A DNA stretch of 64,000 nucleotides, taken from contig OZ037773.1 in NCBI GenBank assembly GCA_964035545.1, positions 401,751 to 465,750 of the forward strand, in the 5' to 3' direction. Source of the stretch: Bugula neritina. Lineage: Eukaryota > Animalia > Bryozoa. The notes under the pieces are model-generated. The model did no database searches. It was not told the origin of the DNA and was given only the letters and a program-made list of their open reading frames with translations. Numbering within the stretch: the first letter of the stretch is position 1; each line of letters opens with the position of its first letter. The position numbers and the translations under genes were made by a program. Of the stretch, positions 26,578 to 40,877 are shown piece by piece.

Positions 26578-29500
26578 CTATTTTCTACCCATTTTTGTTC
26601 CAAGTCTTGCAAAATTCAAACCGGTCAGTTTCTAAAATTTACAAGAAAATAAAGTATTAATGTACATGATATCATAATAATATAAACACACTTTCTGTAT
26701 TTAGATTACTTTGTACTAAATACTTTATAAATAAATAAAAGTAAGTAAATAAATATGTAAGAAGCTAAATTTTACAACATGACACTTCAAAGCAATGTTT
26801 ATTCAGAATATTAGAGTAATAAATAGCTTTCGGCCATATTTCTCAATTAATACATGTTTCAGCTCCTGGTTCATCAAACTATAGATTGATATGTTGTTAT
26901 AAATAAGGCTATACTTGAGACATAATGTATAATGAAAGTGAATTATTAACAAATTACACATTGAAGTTCAAAAACATAATTCTTGTTAGATAGCCCGTGC
27001 TCTCTGTAAATAGGAGACTAAACGACGAACCTGGCACTGATAGCCCAGTCTAGCTAACGAGTTTACATCTAATAGGGGAACACAGGAGGGTCTGCCATGG
27101 GCACACTGGAAGGGCAGGCAACAGCCTGACAGTGTTTTTATGAGGGACTTGCACTGAGATCTTGTCAATTCATCACCAAACTTTATAGAGCCTGAAGTGG
27201 ATACAGAGTAGAGTATACAGAGTAGAGTATACAGAGTAGAATATACAGAGTATACAGAGTAGAGTATACAGAGTATACAGAGTATACAGAGTAGAGTATA
27301 CAGAGTAGAGTATACAGAGTAGAGTATACAGAGTAGAGTATACAGAGTAGAGTATACAGAGTAGAGTATACAGAGTAGAGTATACAGAGTAGAGTATACA
27401 GAGTAGAGTATACAGAGTAGAGTATACAGAGTAGAGTATACAGAGTAGAGTATACAGAGTAGAGTATACAGAGTAGAGTATACAGAGTAGAGTATACAAA
27501 GTATACAGAGTAGAGTATACAGAGTAGAGTATACAGAGTATACAGAGTAGAGTATACAGAGTAGAGTATACAGAGTATACAGAGTAGAGTATACAGAGTA
27601 GAGTATACAGAGTAGAGTATACAAAGTATACAGAGTAGAGTATACAGAGTAGAGTATACAGAGTATACAGAGTAGAGTATACAGAGTAGAGTATACAGAG
27701 TAGAGTATACAGAGTAGAGTATACAGAGTAGAGTATACAGAGTAGAGTATACAGAGTATACAGAGTATACAGAGTATACAGAGTATACAGAGTATACAGA
27801 GTATACAGAGTATACAGAGTATACAGAGTATACAGAGTATACAGAGTATACAGAGTATACAGAGTATACAGAGTATACAGAGTATACAGAGTATACAGAG
27901 TATACAGAGTATACAGAGTATACAGAGTATACAGAGTATACAGAGTATACAGAGTATACAGAGTATACAGAGTATACAGAGTATACAGAGTAGAGTATAC
28001 AGAGTAGAGTATACAGAGTAGAGTATACAGAGTAGTATACAGAATATTTAAAAGAAAGGGTGCAGAGGAAAGTACATAGTATAGAGTAAAAAGAGAAGTC
28101 TCGCTATAGTACCACCAGTACAATAAATAGCGTAAATAAACCAAAGCAATTCTCCAATTGATTTGGCTTGAGTAATATGAAGTACTAAAACACTTTTTCC
28201 AATAAGATTTTGTGGTCTCACATGGTGGACACCATTTCTCTATTTTCTATAAACCCAAAATTAGCCAACTCTTTACACTGCAGGGCGTTACCATTACATC
28301 CTAGATTAGCAATGTGCAGTTCAATCAAGAAGTCATGAATCATTATTAGATGGAGTTATTCCCCCTCTAGGGAGGCTAACAGGCTACAGTTTAATGTTGG
28401 CTGTTCACTTTCCAAAAATATAAATTAGAACTTTTGAAATTCAATTCTATCCTAAAATATGTGCTTTTAGCTAAAATTCTTATTGTTTGCAAATTTACCA
28501 CCATTAAGATAAAATTTTTATTAAACAAATGCTTTTATATTAAAACTCTAGGGTCCTTTAATAAGTGCATGTAAAATTTGAATTTAACACTGTTTGTCTT
28601 GCCTTTACATTTCTAATTATATGTTTATTTTATTTACATAATTTAAACTTCAATATTCAGTTTGTGCTATAAAGATGGAATTTACAAGTTAGAGCTCCCT
28701 CTGGCTAACATTAAGATATCTTTTAGTAATTCTAATGGTAATACAACATAGAGTGTTGATAGGTATTCTGTAGAGATCATATGTATGCTCTCCTTACTGC
28801 CTGACAAACAACTCACCTCTACAAGCATGTGAATTGAGACACTCCTGGTAAGCCTTAGGTCTAATAACAGCAGTACAGCCTCTCTCCAACACCTCGGACA
28901 CCACACTTTCTACATATTTCTACGCAATATAATAACTCAGCTATAGCGCCTGCATATTTATTCTCGGTGAGAGAGGGCTTAAAGTTATGCGTGAGACAGT
29001 GCTATGGTATGTAAATTTAAACTTCAAAGCTCTCACATTGCAACCAGATACACCTGCATAACTGAGGTCAGCGAGAAAATATATAATATGATACATCATA
29101 CAAAAATATAATATAACATAGTGGACCATATTGTCATATAAATACCCCTTTATGACAGTACTGATATAGAATACATGTAATATTTTTACCTTAAAATAGG
29201 AGTTATCATCTTTTGCATACTCGAGTATCAGAAGAGGGAGTGAAAATACCTGGACGCTCGTTGTGCTCTCAACAGATAACGAAATGCCTACAGAACGAGT
29301 TGTAATTACAGTGAATAATGATTATATAATGTACTTCAAAAACCCCTTGAGTAAAGAGAAACCAGCTATTCTGGTATATCAAATAAAGTCAAATATTATT
29401 CATGTCCGTTGAAATTTAATTAATTCATTGCCTAATAAAATACCTGAGATGTCCGAGAGCTAAATATAACTGCAGCAAACAAGCTCTACACTCCTAGATA

Positions 29501-32500
29501 ACTTTAGACAAGGCTGTTTGTGAAGCAAAATATGATTGTAAAGTAGAGCCTGTTTCACCCTACAGCTACAATGCTAGGAACTTGATATTCAAGCTACCTA
29601 AGAGTGGAGAAATCTGCAGTCTACCTAACTTAGCAACGTAATCTCTGGAGGCTTTCTCCACCAAGAATTGGCAGACATTCTCTTCGAGCTGCACAGTGAG
29701 AGGCTGTTTGAGCGAGTCATACAGGATATGACCAGACTTGCTGCCAATATTCTTGCTGCCGGTATACTTTCTGTCGAGCAGTTCTACTCGAACTCTCTCG
29801 TGCGCTGCATGCTGGTCTACGGCCAGTAAGACCACCTCACCTGACAACATCAAGTAATTTAGAAATAGTATTCTTTGTATATCATCGAGTTCTTTTATTG
29901 TATGTACAACTCTTGACATGCGAAGACAGCTTCTCTTATGACTTTATTAAGTTCACACTAAAAGAGTAGTTTTTGTGGCTTATATTTGAATATCTTGTGA
30001 CTGTAGCCAGGAGTGTGCTGAACCCCTCATAACTTGACCCCTTAATTTGATAAGAATAATTAAAGGGGATGTCAATTACATAATAATACAATATTTACAT
30101 CTTCCTAGTAAATTTTGTGGTATTGTGTTACTATAAGTACCAAATTGTGCTAAGTTTAACCCAATTGATTTGCACTACAGAAAAATTTTTTGAGTAATAA
30201 CCTGTAAGCTAATATAAATTACACAATACCACTATATATCTGATGTCACAATATGGAATACATATTTTGCAGAATTATTTTCGTATGAAGATTCAGTGCG
30301 ATGCTATTAATAGTAAATATATGAAGGTAACTACAGCACCACTCTATAGACATGATGGTAGAGATAGTACTGTGGCATGCACACTGTATTGTGACATATT
30401 GTGACACTACCAAAAAGTCACCGACTAAACATTTATTCAGTTGAGACAAGCAACATATGGTGACCAACTTGAAGCCCCAAGCCTAACTTAAATGTACCTT
30501 TCACAGGTTAATGGGTAAAAAACATTGTAACTTAATTAATATCAATTACTTGTGTTTGCTGAAATTAAGACATCAAGGTCACTTTAGGCCTAGTGCTTTG
30601 GTAAACATTTTTGTAAAAAGAAAATATGACAAAGCTCTGTAGAACAAATTTATCAATAGAGAAAGTCAGCTATCTTATTTCACTATATTCATAGTGCAGA
30701 CAACTCTCCATCCCCATATATTCACGCCTCATCTCCATCATTGCAACACAAAGGTACACTTCCAATATTTTGAATCAACTGACGACATTTTTTTAAATTG
30801 TGAACAAATAGATAGAAGGACATGTAGTAGTATGAAATACATGTCCTTCTATCTATTTCATACTACTACATGTCCTATCTATTTCACGTAATGCATGGCG
30901 TGTCTTACCTGATCTTGTTTTGCTAACAACCAAAATAAATTGATTTCCCCATTGACCAATCACATCAGAGGTAACAGAAAGCATGTCTGCCGTTAAACTG
31001 ACCTCTTTCTTAAAGGTCAATGGTGCAAGAACTTCCTAAAATCAGTGAAGATAATTTACAGACCATCAACTAGCAAAACCCACATTCTATTATCATCTTA
31101 ATTATAACCTCTCTAAGCAATTTATTAAATAATGCAGCCAAAATATTATTGTGAACTCATTTGATTTGTGAAGTGCAAAACCAGTACAACTTACTCTATG
31201 GAAAGCTACAAAGTTCTTATTTCTGATTTGTTGAACCAGAGGCTCTACATTAGGCAGAGTATTTGGAGTTTTAAATGGTGTCTTATAAGGCTGCTCTCTG
31301 GTACGAGATAAACTGGGGGGTTTCAAAGGAGTGGTAGCAACTTCTGCAGCTAATAAAACATACAATGTATGGGAGAATATTACCCTATTCATATTATACA
31401 ACTCTTATTGCCCTTGCTTGCCTTCTATTGCAGTGCATGTGATCATATATAATACAACACATCAACCTATGTATTGGCATCTATATCAGTAAAAACAGCC
31501 TGCAATTATTCTATTTAAATTGAAAGTTCAAGTATACAACTATACTAAATATCTTACCAATCTCAACTTTTTCCGGGGGAAAAAAAGTATGAAGACACAT
31601 TTATTGTGCTAAGCTGCATAAAGTATCTTTTGACAATGACAAACTCATTTTGCATAAAAACATTAAAAGCATGTATATTAATATCTAACACTTACCGGAC
31701 TGCTGCACAACCTGATTGGCAGGTGTCAGGGCCGTTGTCAAAAGTTTGCTATTTGTGACACTCTGGTTGACATCCTCTGCAAGGTACTTCAGCTCCTCAC
31801 TAGTGAAAGACGACATGGAACTGACAGACGTGGTGTGGTTTGAAAGAGCGAGGGTAGAACATACATGCATGGCATTAACATCTTGAGAGTTTCTGATAGA
31901 AGTAGAAGCACATTGAAGAGATTTCTGAGGGATATTGCAACCTTGAAGCAATGGTTGGGGCTGAGCAGTGTTACTTGAAGCACCTTGGGGTACCTGTCGG
32001 GGCTGGTCATCACACTGGCGAGCACTTTGAAGGGCTTGATGAGACTGGTGTTTGGAATCTAGAAGACATTGAAGAGCTTGCTGGGATGGGCAAGAGTTGC
32101 ATGGAATACACTGAAGCATTTGCTGTGAGCTGGTTACCTGACTGTCCTGAACAACATGGTTGGGTTTAGCAGAGAGGGAAGGCATTTTCCATCCAATATC
32201 TAAAGCAATCTCTGACCAGCTGCTATCAGAAAATTTGTCATTTGGTGGACAATTTGAGTCAATTATATTATTTTTGGGAACAAAATTTCCTGGTAGTATG
32301 CCAGTATGCTGTGTATTAAAGGAAGTTGGGTTGCTTAAATTAAGAAATTCAAAATCAATGTGTTTATTTGCATTAATCTCAACATTATCTTCATGTTTGT
32401 ATTTATTTAGACTCAATGTCTTGTGGTATTTCTTTTTACAGAGATATAGTATAGCTTGCTTTGTTACTAGAGAGCAAGTGCTAAGAGATGCTGAGGGAGA

Positions 32501-35500
32501 GAGGAAGGCTATATTGTCTTCTAGATTGTTTTCATTTGAAATCTCCGGTTTAGACTCTCTACCAACATCTGAAGGGAAAAATTCCATTTCCTTGCTAAGC
32601 TGCTCTTTAGCACTTATTTCTGCACCTGAATCTAGAGCACTATTTTGTAACTCCATACTTCCATCAGTCAATTTATCTGAAGTTTTAGCATCAAAGTTAA
32701 CCTGCAGATTACTGTTAGTGTTTGAGAAGGTTTCCGGGGAGTGGTGCATGATCTCCTGAGGAGATGAACCAGAGCTGCCAGTTTCTGCTGGCAATGTGGA
32801 AATTTCCTGTGACGGTTGACTAACTCTGAAATCTGTGGAACAATTTACAGGGACATCCTTATTCGACATCACACATTCAGGGGAAGATGAAGAAACAGGC
32901 GAGACGGCAATATTGAAGCTAGTATTGCACTCGGGTACATGCTTAGAAATACTTGAGTCGTTACTTGAGTTAAGTACAGACGTCTGCACTGATGTAATAG
33001 AATGAGATTTGACAGACAGATTGTAGTTTGTGATAAATAAAGAACTGTTATGCTGGCTACCAAGGTGTTCAGCAAGGGAGGAGTGGGAACAGCCATCTAC
33101 ATGTGTTGAAACAGTCTCCAACCAGCTCCCGTGCTCTGTGAAATAAACAATTGTTAGAGTCAAATTAGCTGCATTGCTATGGACCTGCCTGTAGTAACAT
33201 GTCTGATTAAACAACCAAGCATAGAATCACATGATGAATCAGTACCAAGTCTAAGTAGCAACAAAAGCTTGTATGTTACAGTTACACACAGCTAGTGAAA
33301 ATCAGTTTCAAGTGAGTGAATAGAGAACCTAAGGATGAGAGGATAAGCATGGATCATGGGTATTGTAGATCTGCATGTGTAGATGGATAGTCACCTACTG
33401 GAGAGTCTGCCAACTGGAAGACTGCATCTGATGGACTTCTCTGTTCACTGTGTGGGTTATAGAGTTCCACGTCGTCAGGTATTACAGGTGAAACTGCTCC
33501 CCTCTCTGAACCTTGGTAGAGGAACTCACTGCTGCTGTCACTGCTGCTCTTCTCTCCTGCATTTAGACATCACGTCACATTCACTATGACAAATCTTATG
33601 ATATAAATTCAACAAACCTAAGTATAGCTCTGAATGTCAAAATCTGTAATTGGAAATCAAATAGCTATAATGTGTTATAATTTATATATCTTTTAATCTA
33701 CGAAGGGTTATATATTATATAGTTTACAAAGAATTGTATATTATATAGTTTACAAAGGGTCAATGCTTGCCTTCAATTATCTTTCTAAATATTTCATTTG
33801 CAGCTTCCTCAGAATTTTCGGACTTCTCGTTCTCCCAGCCATGTTCAAGGGAGACCCTGCAAGCAGAAGTACGTTGCTCTAACATACCAACAGGTGATCG
33901 CCAATAAGGTGAGTCACTAGGGACTCTTTGTCTCAAAGGAAATTGTTCCCTGGAACTGAAAAAACTAGGTGTTGAGTGTTCTCCAAATAAAGCCTGTTCT
34001 GTTCCCTTGCGCTTTGGAGTTGTCAACTCTCTGGTCCTTACATGGTCATGTGCTCTAAAGGTAGGAGGTATTTTTAGTTCGACATCTTTCCCATAGTCAC
34101 ACCCCGTTGTTAAAGGAGAACTAAAATTAAAATGCAGCTGGAAAGGATCCAAGGCCATGCCTCCACTAACATTCCTTGAGTCACGAGAGAGTAAAGCATT
34201 TTCCGGAAAGTCGGGTGTGTGGTTTGATCTCCGGTAGAAGGCAGGTGTAGTGCATCCTTCCCTCTCCGGTAGACATAACTTGCTTTTGTATGTGACTGCT
34301 GGGTAATTCATATCAACTACTGCCAGTGGGGCATTGTGGGTAACTCGCCGCTCTTTCCTGTATCTTGTATCAACCGGTTTCAATTGCCGCTTCCTTCCAT
34401 TTCCACTACAACGTTCAGACGCCCAGTTGTTCAGATTTTCAGCTGAAACTCTTCTGGGAATACTGTAACCTGCCTCCTGATTTGACACGTGAATTTTCAA
34501 CTGTCGGCCAAATACTGACCGTGAATTTCCACCTACGAAACGAAAACCGCAAAGAACCATCAACATGCACAAACAGCATTTCACAAAATTTCTATTCTAC
34601 TTGCTTTATGTAAAGCAGTTTGAGATATTGAAAAAGTGAACATAAATTAGACACAACATTGCATACTAGCCCAATCAATGTAGGCTTCCATTCATTAACA
34701 TTAAATTTAAGTTGCCGTGCAAAACTTTTAGTCTTCAAAACAATCATATTTTTTCATGTGTGTTTCGTTTTGTAATCAACTGCGCTTATAGAAAATAGAA
34801 TGTTACCTTCTCCATTGAAGCTGGTGTGGAACCCGCATCTAGCTGTGGGTTTAGAGTGGCTCTTGTTCTGCCAAGTCAGCATATCCAGGTTGGAAAGAGA
34901 CCCATTGCTGCCAGATGTAGGAGAGTGACATATGCTGCCGGCATGAGGACGGGTAGAGAGTTGAGTAGCATCTTCCAGACAGAGTTCAGAGTCTGAATCT
35001 GATAACCTCGGCACCTGCATGGTACAGTCTCAGACTATGTCTACACACTCAGATTACATACTCAGATTATAATGTTTAGACTCGGACTACGTCTATATAT
35101 TCAGATTACACGCTCTGTATAGTAATAAAACACCACCTTGTCAGGAATATATTTAGTGAGCCAATAGACTATGTGAGAAACTGGAGTATTTTGGGGTCCG
35201 CAGCGAGATGTCAGCTTCACTGGGGGACTGTACTTCCCCGTATCATCAGGTATTTGAGGGACAGGAGGCCCGAGTCTAGCATCAATAATGTCATCAGCTA
35301 TCGGGGCAGCACTGCAAGCGGTTAGCAAGTTATTACTGTATATTGAAATAAAGGGGCAGCTGTACTCCAGCATATAGAGACGTTAATATAGCATGTTGGA
35401 ACATTAGTATAGCATGTAGAGATGTTAATATAGTACGTAGGGACGTTATTATAACATATAAAGACGTTAGCATAGCATGTGAAGACGTCAGCATAGCATG

Positions 35501-38500
35501 TAGATACGTTAGTATAGCATGTAGAGACGTTGATATAGCATGTAAAGACGTTAGCATAGCATGTAGACGTTAGCGTAGCATGCAGGGACGTTAGCATAGC
35601 ATGTAGACGTTAGCGTAGCATGCAGGGACGTTAGCATGGCATGTAGACGTTAGCATAGCATGTAGGGAGGTTAGCATAGGATGTAGACATTAGTATAGCA
35701 GGACACACATAACAAACTCTGTTAAAAGTTAGCAGCTCAGAAACAATAGCAATAGATGTGTTTAAAATTGATAAAGAATTAATATAAAATCAACAAACCA
35801 TTTACTCTGAGAGCCAATTGGTTGCTCACTTGTAACCACATCTGTGGTTAGTTGACACTCTGGCTCTTTAGGAGCAGAGTGTAGAGAGTGTGAACCAGAC
35901 TCATTCCTGTTTGAAGTTGTTGAACTGAGATCAGTTGGTCCAGAGTTCTTACTCTAAAAGTTGAGATCACTTCCATCACTAACACAAGAATGTTAGCCTT
36001 TGAGCAGAATGGAATCAATAGTTAAGGTTTTAGTGAACATTCTTACCACCTTCTAGACTAATTCTTTTATGGTTTAATTTACATACTCAAGTCGAATAGA
36101 ATTATTGGAAACACTTAGCATTAAATTTCATAAAATAATTCAGAAAGCTGGAAGATACTAAAAATAATATTCATGTCCTATTGGCGGAACTGAGCATGTT
36201 AACTGAATAATAGCACTTCAAACAGTTAATTGTTGTATCTTCATTCATAAATTTGAATCATCGACCATGAAATTAAGCTAAAAAAAACTTAACTATTGTA
36301 GATTGTTTACTAACGGAAGTAAATACATGTTTAAGATGGCTCTATTGGCCTGAGAGACAATGGACATACTTTGTACAGGTTGTGTTTTATTAAAAACTTT
36401 TTGATGATTTTGAAGACAGAGTTGAGCAGAGCCGGCCAGTTGTGGAAGTCCAGGGAGGTTAGTTCAGAGTGGTGAGAGACTCTATACAGCGACCTCTTAC
36501 ATCTGATGTCGAGTATGTACAGGAAGTGGGCAGACTTTGACAGCATCTTCTCGGCGTTGGCTAGAAACATGGAAATATAAGTCAACAGAATTGATAATTG
36601 ACAGTTTAAAGCTTGTTTTGCAAGTGAGTGAATACTTTTCATGCATAAAAACTTTATTCTGCTAACAGCTATGATTATAATTATAAGAACATCTCATAGT
36701 AAGTATTATGTAGCTAACAATAAGACATGCAATTTTATTTTTATTATAATATTATATTACTCATTACCAATATTATCTACTATATATTACCACATTATAT
36801 TATTAAAATAAAAATATTATGGAACAGCACTACAAGAATATGTTTTCTTACATTTGTTTTGTTGAACTAAAGATTTTGTTCATTATACACTACAAACTTG
36901 AAATACTACTACTAGCCATGATACAATTACTGTGCTTGATGGAATTATAGAAAGGCGTAATCTCATATGATGCATGATGATAAAGCAAAGCATGCTCAGG
37001 AAACGACTCTAGTATTATAGAATTTAAAGTCCGTACACACAGGTAACATACACATGTCTTATATATGTATCATACAGGACAGAATAACCCACTTTGCTCA
37101 TCTGTGTTCTTACTGCTTGGCGCAGAGATGGCTGAGGCCTTGAGCTGAGCATCAATTGATTGCTGAATTCTTTGAGAGCCCAGCTGCCTGTGGTTGACTG
37201 TAACCAACTTGATCTTCCTACCCCTGTACGCTGTCGTGCTGACCACACCAACTATCTGTATGCAAGAGTGGCTCCCCCTCAGACTGTGAATGTTGGAACA
37301 GTAGTCACTGCCGTGAGTATCCAGTATAGCATCTATACAGGAAAAGCTAATGTGCAGAACGTGCAGACATAGACAAGTGTCATGAGAGGAAAGCAAAAGC
37401 AGACCTCAGGTTTACAGCATATCACTCGCCAACAAACAATGCAATGACAGAACTCTAGATATATTCATTATATTCAGTAGCGGGCAGGTGGTCTTACTGT
37501 CATCACAAGCATAGTGTCTCTTCTTCAAGTTTACCATCACTCACTTATGATATCAGGAAATGTACACAAGTTTGAAACATATATTTGTTCTAAGACGCAA
37601 GCTCTGTTGAAAGAAGAGCTTACAGAAGATACCAAAAATAAATAGAAACCTTTAATAGAAGTTATTCTGCTGGTGTTGATCAGCACTTTCCCATTCTGCT
37701 CGTCACGCAAAGAGAGTGAAATTTTTCCAGCTAGACTGATGGCAAGACCTTGCACCAACTCCACTATTTCTTTCAGTGACTTAGTCTCATTGGTGTGTTT
37801 CTTCCTCACCGGTTGCTTGTGAAAGAGGTTATGCACAGTGACGGTGGTGCCAGCACTGGGGCGTTCATCTGAGAGCTTGTCAACCACACCTTCAACATCA
37901 AACAGATCTTCAACATTGAACACACCTTTAACAATGAACACAATTTTAAGATTGCTAACAGCTAAAGGGAGGCTCTCGCATAACATTTATATGCCATACA
38001 ATTGGCCAAGAAATAGCAGACCTATCAAATTCGAAGTAACAAGAAACATTTTTTAAGAAACACCTAGGTTCTCGCAGATAGCTGCAGCACAAAAGGTAGT
38101 CTGTGACTGTGATATAAATTTGAATTAAATTATGGAAAAATAGTGAATCAACTGACCGACTTTGTCATGAAACACCTTGCGATACGTGGCACAGTCTGCC
38201 GGGTTATTGCGTCGTGAGATAACCTCTACCTTTTCACTGACAGCTATAATGTTGGCTATGGCGGAACCACTATTTCCATGCCATACCGAGGGCTGCTCTA
38301 ATGTGCGGATATTCTGATTAGACTTTCTGTAGAAGATGTTGTAATGAACATTAGAGATGGCATAGGAAACAGAGTATATATTAGCCGTGTAATGATTTTA
38401 TTATTTAAAAATTTTCACCTAAAGCTTCTATGAAAAAGAAATATCTGTGCTGTATTAATATAGTGCTATCAACGCACATGACTGCTATACACACACGTAT

Positions 38501-38908
38501 TTGCAATATTTCAGAAGCCAACTACATCTGCATCCATAGGCTTCGTTACGATGCCAATCTTCTAATTTATTGACGTAAATAATAGCTAAAGACATTTAGG
38601 CATTAACCAAAAATCACAATACTGATAATTAATAGTGCTGCATACTTCTCCGCAAGTCTAAGCATTTCTGATTGTGTAATTCCCACTCCATTATCTACAA
38701 CTTGCGCATAAGCCCTTGCGACATCAACTCTGATGCTAATACAATTGGGAGATGAAGCTACAGCATTTAACACTAGCTCTTCAACACAGCGAGTCAGGCT
38801 TGTCACAGCATAGTCAGGTTTAAAATTCTCAAAAGATGGAAAGAAATCTTTCAGCTGTGTTGTTGATTTCACAGCAGGTCGAGATTGCTTCTTGGAAACT
38901 TGTTTCCA
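26578..38908 (-). CDS. MLH3: DNA mismatch repair / meiotic crossover endonuclease MLH3 (MutL-gamma subunit); true start unresolved
   Basis: Exons (minus strand): ~38908-38646, 38326-38157, 37925-37650, 37332-37093, 36560-36370, 35953-35799, 35311-35137, 35014-34807, 34532-33771, 33556-33395, 33135-31696, 31349-31195, 31035-30909, 29840-29625, 29287-29190, 28919-28817, 27191-27031, 26631-26578; phases consistent. N-terminal CVEELVLN, VVDNGVG, SAGTTVTVHNLF..PVR; long Ser-rich linker; C-terminal DQHAAHERVRVE, ACRGSIKFGD.L and LPFQCAHGRPS are diagnostic of MLH3. Confidence 0.95.
27202..28042. repeat. Compound 14-bp (tatacagagtagag) / 9-bp (tatacagag) satellite abutting an MLH3 acceptor
   Basis: Directly visible; ends about 10 nt from the acceptor at 27192. 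Confidence 0.97.
35375..35700. repeat. 19-21-bp minisatellite (gacgttagcatagcatgtaga)n in an MLH3 intron
   Basis: Direct tandem periodicity, more diverged at the left end. Confidence 0.9.
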
Positions 38909-39974
38909 CTATTAATTGACAGTTAAAACTCCCACTATTATAAACACATTGAATAATAGCATGTTTGAAACATGTAAACATTAAAGTTATAAGTATGAGA
39001 TCTTTCAAGTGGAGACTCTTTATAGCTGTGCCTAAGTTGGCTAGGTAAACAATAATGCATTTTTCCACTGTCTATTTGTAAAAATATTTCAAAATAACAA
39101 CAGAGGAAACTGCTATAACAAGCTGAGGTATATAAACAAAGCATAACATATATTAAGGAGACAATGCCAAGTTGGAAAAGAAGCATAACATACCATAACA
39201 TTCATCCTTAGAATCCATTTTGTAATAATTTACAAATTGTCTGAAGCCTTTTCATCATAAGTCCATCCCTGTGATACAAATTTCAACCTTATTTGACTAT
39301 TAAAAATATTAGAAAATTAAAGGTTTGTGTTTGCTGTTTTTTAATTTTATTTTTTGGTAGAGGGTCTACTAAATAGTAGCAAACAAGAAACTATAAAAAA
39401 TATTTTCTAGATCTACAATTCCATTTCATTGCTTAACAGTGTTGGGTTTGTAACCTAATATCCTGGCTATGTAGCAACTAATAGTAAGCAACTAAAATTA
39501 CCACAATCTATTCTTCAAAAACTACAAACGTTATTATGAGTATTTCACATTTCACAAAATCAAATGAAACTTAGAATGAAAGAATAAACAATGCATAGTA
39601 GATAAACTTTAGCTATGAGAACATTTATAGCATTGTCAACGTTGAGCAACTAGCTGTGGTAAAATAACTATTACAACACAACACCAATAGGGATTATTAT
39701 TATGCCACACCTCCATATAATTGTTATCTTCTAACCATAAATAGAAATAAAACTTATGTTCAGTTTTCAAGCAAGTATATTTTTTGTCTTTGAATTTCTA
39801 GCACAAATTGAAATTAATTACGAAAAAAGTTACAAATTAATAACCCAGTGAGAAGAATATTACTACCAGTCACTGCCAAGTTTGGAACAAAAGCATTTAA
39901 AATGTTATAACCTATGGTAATGCTAATTATAGAGCCATTTAATATATTTCTTAATATTCAAAAGTATTATCACT

Positions 39975-40746
39975 ATTATGACAAGAACATCTAGAGGACG
40001 CAGGTCTCAAGGTGAGCCGGAAGAAAAGGGAGCATCTTTCACCAAAGTAAAGCACCAGAAGGATCAGAATAAAAAGATATGACCAGGAAGATTATACTGA
40101 GCTACCAACAACAAGCAAGTTCAAGTATCTGGGGACAGTGATAAATCAGGATGGAGGCTGTGAAGCAGAAGTCACAAGAAGAATAAGTGCAGCGTGGGAT
40201 AGATGGAGGGACTTATCAGGAGTTCTGTGTGATAAAAAAGTGCCTAGGCAACTGAAGGTATTACTCTACAAAACAATCATAAAACCAACACTGATATAAT
40301 ATATATATATATGGCAATGAAACATGGCCTATCACCCAGAGGCAAGAACAAAGGATAGAGGCAAACGAAATGCGAGTGCTCAGGCACATACATGGAATAA
40401 ACTGGGAGGATCATTTTAGGAATGAAGACATAAGGAGCGAAGCTAAGGTTAAACCTGTGTCTAGGCATATGAGGAAGAAAAGATATCAGTGGTATGGTCA
40501 TGTGCAGAGGAGAGATGGTGAAGAGGATATTAGATATGTGACTGAGTTAAAAATATTGGGGAAGAGAAAGAGAGGACGGCCCAAACGAAGATGGATGGAC
40601 ACGATAGGAGATGACATGAAGCGGTGGGGCCTTGAACCAGAGGATGCAGAAAAACCGGGAAAGATGGCAGACGCTGATAGAAATTGGGAACCTGCAGACC
40701 GGTCACCCGTACAGGACTACAACCGTATAGGTGTGAAAAGTGTGAA
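39975..40746 (+). mobile_element. 5'-truncated, decayed RTE-clade non-LTR retrotransposon (RT thumb / C-terminal region)
   Basis: Translates to FKYLGTVINQDGGCEAEVTRRISAAW..LSGVLCDKKVP..LKVLLYKTIIKPTL.Y, GNETWP, EMRVLR.I.G..WEDHFRNEDIR, QWYGHVQRR, GKRKRGRPKRRWMD; frameshifted. Confidence 0.9.
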
Positions 40747-40877
40747 TTATCACTATTATGCCTATTTTATTCCGACAGTTACTTTCTCTATAATCAACTT
40801 GCAGTAAGTATAATATAAGCTGTTAACCAATATATCAAAAGTAAAAAATAAAACGATAATCATCAATGCATATAGCT

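Follow-up and report, generated by a model that had tools for sequence, protein, structure and literature searches.

A bryozoan MLH3 paralogue with intact endonuclease motifs and a decayed, probably hydrolysis-dead ATP site

A stretch of 64,000 nucleotides from the genome of the bryozoan Bugula neritina (GenBank assembly GCA_964035545.1, contig OZ037773.1, forward-strand positions 401,751 to 465,750; G000:C9:401751-465750 in our numbering, where G000 is the 216-Mb genome assembly) was analyzed and is referred to below as the window. It is AT-rich animal DNA, not of human origin, and contains, on the minus strand, a multi-exon, intron-rich MLH3 gene extending from approximately 39205 to 26986 (splice sites read from the DNA), which we call paralogue A. 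We consider it probable, from the sequence comparisons described here, that this gene is a full-length cheilostome MLH3 paralogue whose product cannot hydrolyse ATP, and which selection keeps as a working nuclease subunit. The predicted protein has the architecture of MLH3, i.e. a GHKL domain, a transducer domain, a long linker and a MutL C-terminal domain.

The exon model is based on a reading of the splice sites in the DNA and on a check against an orthologous contig of a sibling species (L003), which was found in JGI metagenome 3300002729 via the open reading frame (ORF) of exon 3. All similarity searches with paralogue A were performed exon by exon; exons were joined for codon counting and for the merging of HMM-aligned rows. 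The closest named relative is the Mlh3-like protein XP_067939925.1 of Watersipora subatra (hereafter Watersipora MLH3). The features of the gene, all on the minus strand, are listed below (positions in the window; HMM, hidden Markov model; E, expectation value).

39194..39205, minus strand: candidate exon 0 (ATG AAT GTT ATG, then a gtatgt donor), which would provide the start codon
38646..38908, minus strand: exon 1, N-terminal extension (WKQVSKKQSRP), decayed N-terminal strap, motif I and motif II
38157..38326, minus strand: exon 2, ATP lid with KSN and GNSGSAI; read from the DNA, splice sites kept in L003
37650..37889, minus strand: exon 3, motif IV (AGTTVTV) and start of the transducer domain; splice sites kept in L003
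37093..37332, minus strand: exon 4, transducer domain; phase-consistent splice sites kept in L003
36370..36560, minus strand: exon 5, transducer loop and helix; MLH3 N-terminal HMM, E 1.2e-8
31100..36369, minus strand: linker, several open exons (ORFs 35104-35382, 33763-34596, 33357-33569, 31688-33226 and 31105-31404); boundaries approximate
30898..31035, minus strand: first exon of the C-terminal domain; MLH3 C-terminal HMM, E 3e-4; 52% identity to Watersipora MLH3
29590..29880, minus strand: C-terminal-domain exon with DQHAAHERVRVE; Pfam MutL_C
28811..28919, minus strand: C-terminal-domain exon with ACR (28818-28826); protein identical in L003, matching SQACRG of Watersipora MLH3
26986..27200, minus strand: last exon, FQCAHGRPS (CAHGRP at 27088-27105) and stop codon; MLH3 C-terminal HMM, E 5e-24; 49% identity to Watersipora MLH3

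Comparison of the motifs revealed decay that is specific to the ATP site and spares the endonuclease motifs. Within exon 1, motif I (EELVLNAVAS, 38753-38782) retains the Glu and the Asn, the Asp of NxxD being replaced by Ala, and motif II (VVDNGVG, 38681-38701) is intact. The junction of exons 1 and 2 reads AE-K and then, across the boundary, KSNQNIRTLEQP, so that KSN (38317-38325) occupies the aligned position of TSK. The position of G[FY]RGEAL is taken by GNSGSAI (38257-38277), in which the glycines and the Ala are kept and both the Arg and the Glu have become Ser. Motif IV (AGTTVTV, 37834-37854) is intact. The transducer loop, YRVSHHSELTSLDF (36445-36486), contains RVSHHSEL; relative to D[IV]xxxPxK, Pro is replaced by Ser, and Leu (36460-36462) stands in place of the Lys that contacts the gamma-phosphate. 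The N-terminal strap is decayed as well. A preliminary description of this DNA had reported NAVAS, the absence of TSK, GNSGSAI, RVSHHSEL and the retention of DNGxG and GTTV, and each of these readings was correct.

In MutL ATPases the TSK lysine acts as the general acid, and its substitution (K79A) eliminates hydrolysis without eliminating binding; the transition state is stabilised by the transducer lysine, and in Escherichia coli MutL K307A lowers kcat 20-fold (bioRxiv 10.1101/2021.07.09.451751). Since paralogue A has lost both lysines, Arg and Glu of the lid, and also the strap, its N-terminal domain is predicted to be hydrolysis-dead. Weak nucleotide binding may persist, because the domain still has the Glu, the Asn, DxGxG, the glycines and GTTV. 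The length of the lid loop varies across MLH3s and two lysines (KK) closely precede the position expected for the TSK lysine, and for these reasons a substitute lysine is conceivable.

The preliminary description had pointed out that its interpretation would fall if alternative exons restored TSK or GFRGEAL. A tblastn search of the whole 64 kb, with canonical N-terminal exons as queries, matched only the modelled exons 1 to 5, and a six-frame motif scan of the window found no GFRGE elsewhere; therefore, the window DNA holds no alternative exon that would restore the motifs, and this possibility was rejected.

The rarity of the changes was assessed with 88 other MLH3 representatives aligned to the columns of an MLH3 N-terminal HMM. 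The residues concerned are near-invariant: T, S and K of TSK are kept in 62/62, 60/62 and 61/62 sequences, R and E of GxRGE in 64/67 and 65/67, the Asp of NxxD in 28 of 29, and the transducer Pro and Lys (PxK) in 82/88 and 83/88, respectively. Paralogue A deviates at all of these positions. A few long-branch sequences are without the transducer Lys, yet they have TSK and GxRGE. The substitutions are thus not common in invertebrate MLH3s, so that this further condition named in the preliminary description does not refute it either. In the same genome MLH1 (contig C5), PMS2 (C4) and PMS1 (C1) possess TSK, GFRGEAL and the transducer Lys (DVNxxPxK), so that MLH1 and PMS2, whose inspection had been proposed, are both canonical. 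Given this, and the near-invariance among other MLH3s, the decay is specific to the window gene.

The assignment of the gene to MLH3 is well founded. A search of 1.84 billion representative proteins with exon 3 gave 105 matches, and every named one was MLH3, with no other MutL paralogue among them. In a tree of N-terminal domains the window gene lies inside animal MLH3, with the MLH1, PMS2 and PMS1 of the genome as outgroup, and its C-terminal domain is the sole MLH3-type one in the genome; the identity proposed in the preliminary description therefore holds. A custom HMM of the MLH3 N-terminal domain matches all of exons 1 to 5, in their proper order (E 4e-19 to 2e-5), exon 1 giving the lowest value (4e-19). 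In Pfam, exon 1 scores 26.2 bits for HATPase_c, just below the cut-off of 26.4, exon 2 gave no match and exon 4 a weak one to DNA_mis_repair (E 0.036). Among PDB sequences exon 1 matched only a histidine kinase (E 0.06) and exon 3 gave weak matches to PMS1, PMS2 and MutL; no MLH3 N-terminal structure was found there.

The endonuclease end of the gene is preserved, with all of its metal-binding motifs. The motif DQHAAHERVRVE (29782-29817) was found intact in a motif scan and is identical in L003; the exon ORF that contains it (29569-29943) reaches 26 bits against the Pfam model MutL_C (PF08676; cut-off 25). Between the window and L003 the segment 30901-31000 is 100% identical in nucleotide sequence, and the proteins encoded by the exons with endonuclease motifs are identical. 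The preliminary description was right that the C-terminal motifs are intact, but the interval it gave for the gene, 36370-38800, does not contain them; they are located 6.5 to 9 kb outside it.

Comparison with the sibling contig L003 showed how selection acts on the gene. The two sequences share 87% nucleotide identity, exons and introns alike (intron divergence 0.13). No indel is present in the five N-terminal exons, and every acceptor and donor is preserved. The motifs of L003 have changed in spite of the short divergence (NAIAS, GDSGSSI, SHHSGL), and both sequences retain the GHKL residues Glu, Asn, DxGxG, GxxGxA and GTTV. The ratio of nonsynonymous to synonymous substitution rates (dN/dS; Nei-Gojobori method, window vs. 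L003, a single species pair) was 0.24 for all exons of the N-terminal domain. Divided by domain, as had been suggested, it was 0.62 for exons 1 and 2, which encode the ATP pocket and lid (15 nonsynonymous and 7 synonymous substitutions), and 0.12 for exons 3 to 5 (10.5 and 22.5, respectively), a contrast with a Fisher p value of 0.012; the linker gave 0.52. Paralogue A is under purifying selection, which is relaxed only in the ATP pocket and in the linker. The overall ratio and the conserved splice sites bear out the earlier view that the gene is not a pseudogene. The linker ORFs are open in both the window and L003, with mostly in-frame indels, and short stretches at 35134-35175 and 32120-32224 match the Watersipora model.

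Watersipora MLH3 shares the N-terminal extension of the window gene, and in it, too, the ATP site is decayed and the endonuclease motifs (DQHAAHERIRVE, ACRG and CAHGRPS) are intact; its only precomputed Pfam domain is MutL_C. Exon 3 of the window gene is 97% identical to its counterpart in L003 and 60% identical to Watersipora MLH3; for exon 4 the latter value is 51%. The two genes differ in how the site has decayed: Watersipora MLH3 has lost the motif I Glu (now Asp) and Asn (now Ala) and kept the Asp of NxxD; it also lacks TSK and has GATG for GxRGE. The Watersipora RefSeq model (P0004, residues ~302-355) is without a counterpart of exon 5, owing either to a genuine loss or to an incomplete gene model. 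A word search with the N-terminal region of Watersipora MLH3 found no further bryozoan protein.

Two further sequences, L017 (from ENA) and L020 (from Logan), carry the N-terminal extension specific to this clade, yet have the canonical motifs EELLLNS.D, STSK and GHRGEAL. A FastTree analysis of the N-terminal domain, for which the values given are FastTree support values only, placed them as (L020,(L017,(Watersipora,(window,L003)))), with support of 0.994 for the whole group (clade A) and 0.98 for its three decayed members. The tree fits a single onset of relaxation followed by independent drift. Identities point in the same direction, to relaxation of particular regions: for the pair of decayed lineages they are 62% in exon 3, 24% in exon 2 and 23% in the strap, and for the pair of canonical lineages 62%, 56% and 65%, respectively. 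Because Watersipora subatra has it too, the decay of the ATP site is probably an old, clade-level state and not peculiar to B. neritina.

The genome contains a second MLH3-like gene, paralogue B, on the minus strand of contig C3 (G000:C3:9136472-9142345; loci L021 and L023). It was reached through a match (P0013) from the same JGI sample as L003 that is just 36% identical in exon 3. Paralogue B starts with Met and has the canonical motifs EELVLNALDS, DNGSG, TSSK, GYRGEAL and LEPDK, and it passes the Pfam HATPase_c cut-offs that paralogue A fails. All four intron positions are common to A and B, which form sister clades within animal MLH3 (FastTree support 1.0). The dN/dS of B is 0.083 for the N-terminal domain and 0.22 for the linker. 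Its reading frame ends after the linker, at a conserved LQRIFAPL tail, in B. neritina, in the sibling-species contig L019 and in the more distantly related L018. Searches with the Pfam model, a custom HMM and the C-terminal domain of Watersipora MLH3 found no C-terminal domain for B, either up to 13 kb downstream or elsewhere in the genome. A distant C-terminal domain was also considered and rejected, the similarities that L018 and contig C3 share downstream of the gene being dispersed repeats. In L019 (6568-6780) exon 2 of B is 47 bp shorter than in G000, through a deletion that shifts the frame and takes out GYRGE, even though the remaining exons appear to be under strong constraint; a loss of recent date, a polymorphic allele or a fault in the assembly could account for it.

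Because L017 and L020, A genes with canonical motifs, fall within clade A, paralogue B arose before the decay of A. As read from these sequences, the duplication came first, the loss of the C-terminal domain of B predates the split between B. neritina and L018, and the decay of A is later, an order compatible with B supplying the ATP-driven steps. The preliminary description had concluded that crossover nicking would be driven by the MLH1 ATPase alone or that the mismatch-repair role was lost. The first of these statements presumes a single MLH3 and is not supported in this form, as a paralogue with an intact and constrained ATP site is present, and B may supply an MLH3-type ATPase in trans.

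Under the explanation that we favour, the N-terminal domain of paralogue A would be a pseudo-ATPase, incapable of ATP hydrolysis and of normal ATP-driven closure, and retained because of its fold, its binding to DNA and its contacts with partners. The protein is predicted to pair with MLH1 via its C-terminal domain and to nick DNA, the ATP-dependent steps being provided by MLH1 and possibly also by the N-terminal-only paralogue B. The decay would have begun after the MLH3 duplication in the bryozoan lineage, on the branch of Bugula and Watersipora, with lineage-specific drift since then.

Several observations weigh against this explanation. When the ORFs of exons 2 and 3 were used in word searches, no spliced transcript fragments were found, the only match being the sibling species. 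The dN/dS contrast between the ATP pocket and exons 3 to 5 derives from approximately 55 substitutions in one species pair, and the timing of the ATP-site loss is relative only, through L017 and L020. Because the Glu, Asn, DxGxG, GxxGxA and GTTV survive, with lysines adjoining the lid, a non-canonical ATPase is conceivable. Maximal cutting by the human ensemble in Mg2+ needs all four ATPase sites (bioRxiv 10.1101/2020.02.12.946293), and the equivalent yeast mlh3 mutations are defective (PMC3538346); loss of the MLH3 ATPase should carry a functional cost if nothing compensates for it. In favour of the explanation, nicking by human MLH3-E28A with Mn2+ or MutSgamma is barely affected (bioRxiv 10.1101/2020.02.12.946293). 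In yeast, mlh3-K80E is a null allele, and mlh3-R96A abolishes mismatch repair and has an intermediate crossover phenotype (PMC3538346).

A different explanation, which we regard as doubtful, is that MutL-gamma in these animals has three parts. According to this proposal the two paralogues degenerated in a complementary manner after the duplication: B would be an ATPase clamp acting with MLH1 in trans and A the nuclease and MLH1-binding end, so that the MLH3 ATPase would have been relocated to B rather than dispensed with. The canonical ATP site of B in the same genome, its origin before the decay of A, the four shared intron positions and the sister relationship of the clades (1.0) are all in keeping with it, as are the strong constraint on B (0.083; linker 0.22), the LQRIFAPL end conserved in three assemblies and the absence of a C-terminal domain from 13 kb downstream of B in a genome whose only MLH3-type one belongs to A. 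That same absence, however, leaves B with no known tether to MLH1, and the 47-bp deletion in L019 means either that B is dispensable there or that the contig is faulty. Moreover, the pair is not a clean fission, because A keeps an N-terminal domain that is still constrained.

It is unlikely, and somewhat more so, that paralogue A is a working non-canonical ATPase, for example with a lysine of the adjacent KK as the general acid and with motif changes that amount to tolerated drift. The residues kept in both the window and L003 (Glu, Asn, DxGxG, GxxGxA, GTTV), the variable length of the lid loop among MLH3s and the purifying selection over the whole N-terminal domain would suit such an enzyme. 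Yet the replacements affect the transducer (Lys, Pro), the lid (Arg, Glu) and the strap all at once, exons 1 and 2 evolve at a dN/dS of 0.62, and the lid exon is just 24% identical to that of Watersipora, whose MLH3 is additionally without the motif I Glu and Asn; the K79A and K307A data show the importance of each lysine. Least credible of all is that the gene is non-functional or being lost, like MLH3 in some other invertebrate lineages. Its branch is long and fast-evolving, constraint is relaxed in exons 1 and 2 and in the linker, and an out-of-frame ATG lies upstream near the candidate start. All exons are nevertheless open and all N-terminal splice sites kept over a dS of ~0.13-0.19, exons 3 to 5 have a dN/dS of 0.12, the endonuclease-motif exons encode identical proteins in the two species, and the same architecture is found in Watersipora.

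The 5′ end of the gene model requires separate comment. Exon 1 (acceptor ag 38909-38910 and donor gt 38644-38645, both present in L003) is without an in-frame ATG. The ATG of the candidate exon 0 is the sole one that finishes in phase 0 before a strong donor, and it lies inside a block of ~60 nt that is 100% identical in L003; in the Watersipora model seven residues precede the homologous WRQV. The out-of-frame ATG upstream (39219-39195), itself part of the conserved block, has a good context, and it may belong to an upstream open reading frame or lie upstream of the transcription start. Exon 4 has an alternative donor of the same phase at 37114.

Two repeats were noted in introns of the gene. 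A tandem repeat with a 21/40-nt period (35369-35700) is located in a linker intron and is mostly missing from L003 (alignment gap ~35400-35660), and an array with a 14-nt period (27201-28043; ~840 bp, ~58 copies) fills most of the last intron and aligns partly with L003. Upstream of MLH3, two open frames on the plus strand (40138-40807) were read by eye as the tail of a retrotransposon protein of the long interspersed nuclear element (LINE)/RTE type; they gave no Pfam match.

Four bryozoan MutS loci were found, one of which is presumably MSH6-like and one MSH2-like, judging only from a comparison of their Walker A strings with consensus sequences; a comparison with the PDB did not separate the other two as MSH3, MSH4 or MSH5. 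HATPase and MutS matches with in-frame TAA/TAG codons occur on two small contigs (G000:C241:425-682 and G000:C284:16833-17162) and fit a ciliate contaminant.

The role of the MLH3 ATPase in crossover resolution is unsettled, as yeast needs the site (PMC3538346) and the human requirement is conditional (bioRxiv 10.1101/2020.02.12.946293). An MLH3 with nuclease motifs but without the catalytic lysines, present in at least two genera, would amount to a natural separation-of-function allele, and the A and B pair would exemplify complementary domain degeneration after the duplication of a core meiotic gene. Should it prove true, which we put forward only tentatively, that cheilostome MLH3 is split over A and B and acts with MLH1, this would be a natural separation of ATPase and endonuclease in a three-component MutL-gamma. 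Both proteins should be expressible and assayable. Our literature search found no work dealing with MLH3 in bryozoans, with duplicated MLH3 genes or with a naturally ATP-dead MLH3.

Like canonical MLH3 (of yeast, mouse, human and most invertebrates), paralogue A has the usual domain order, a long disordered linker, DQHA(X)2E(X)4E, ACR and CAHGRP. It differs in several losses (the lysine of TSK, Arg and Glu in GxRGE, Asp in NxxD, PxK in the transducer, and the N-terminal strap), in having the added WKQV.. extension common to clade A, and in the N-terminal-only paralogue that exists alongside it. It may also be set beside the engineered mutants (yeast mlh3-K80E, -R96A, -N35A and -E31A; human MLH3-E28A), since its natural replacements include the residues that correspond to yeast K80 and R96. 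Whereas those mutants are null or intermediate (yeast) or conditionally defective in vitro (human E28A), the state seen here is natural, affects multiple sites, occurs in two genera and is under selection.

Two known systems provide further points of reference. Yeast Mlh2 and human PMS1 (MutL-beta), as well as the E. coli MutL fragment LN40, keep the ATPase and have no endonuclease function, and in this sense they are the reverse of the window gene. For paralogue B they offer an incomplete analogy, in that PMS1 keeps a C-terminal dimerisation domain, whereas B is without the whole C-terminal domain and the genome has its own PMS1 (contig C1). The meiotic TopoVIB-like proteins belong to another family and another complex than the window MLH3, and offer a possible parallel; in these proteins a GHKL fold has been kept in a recombination complex after the loss of the ATP-binding residues.

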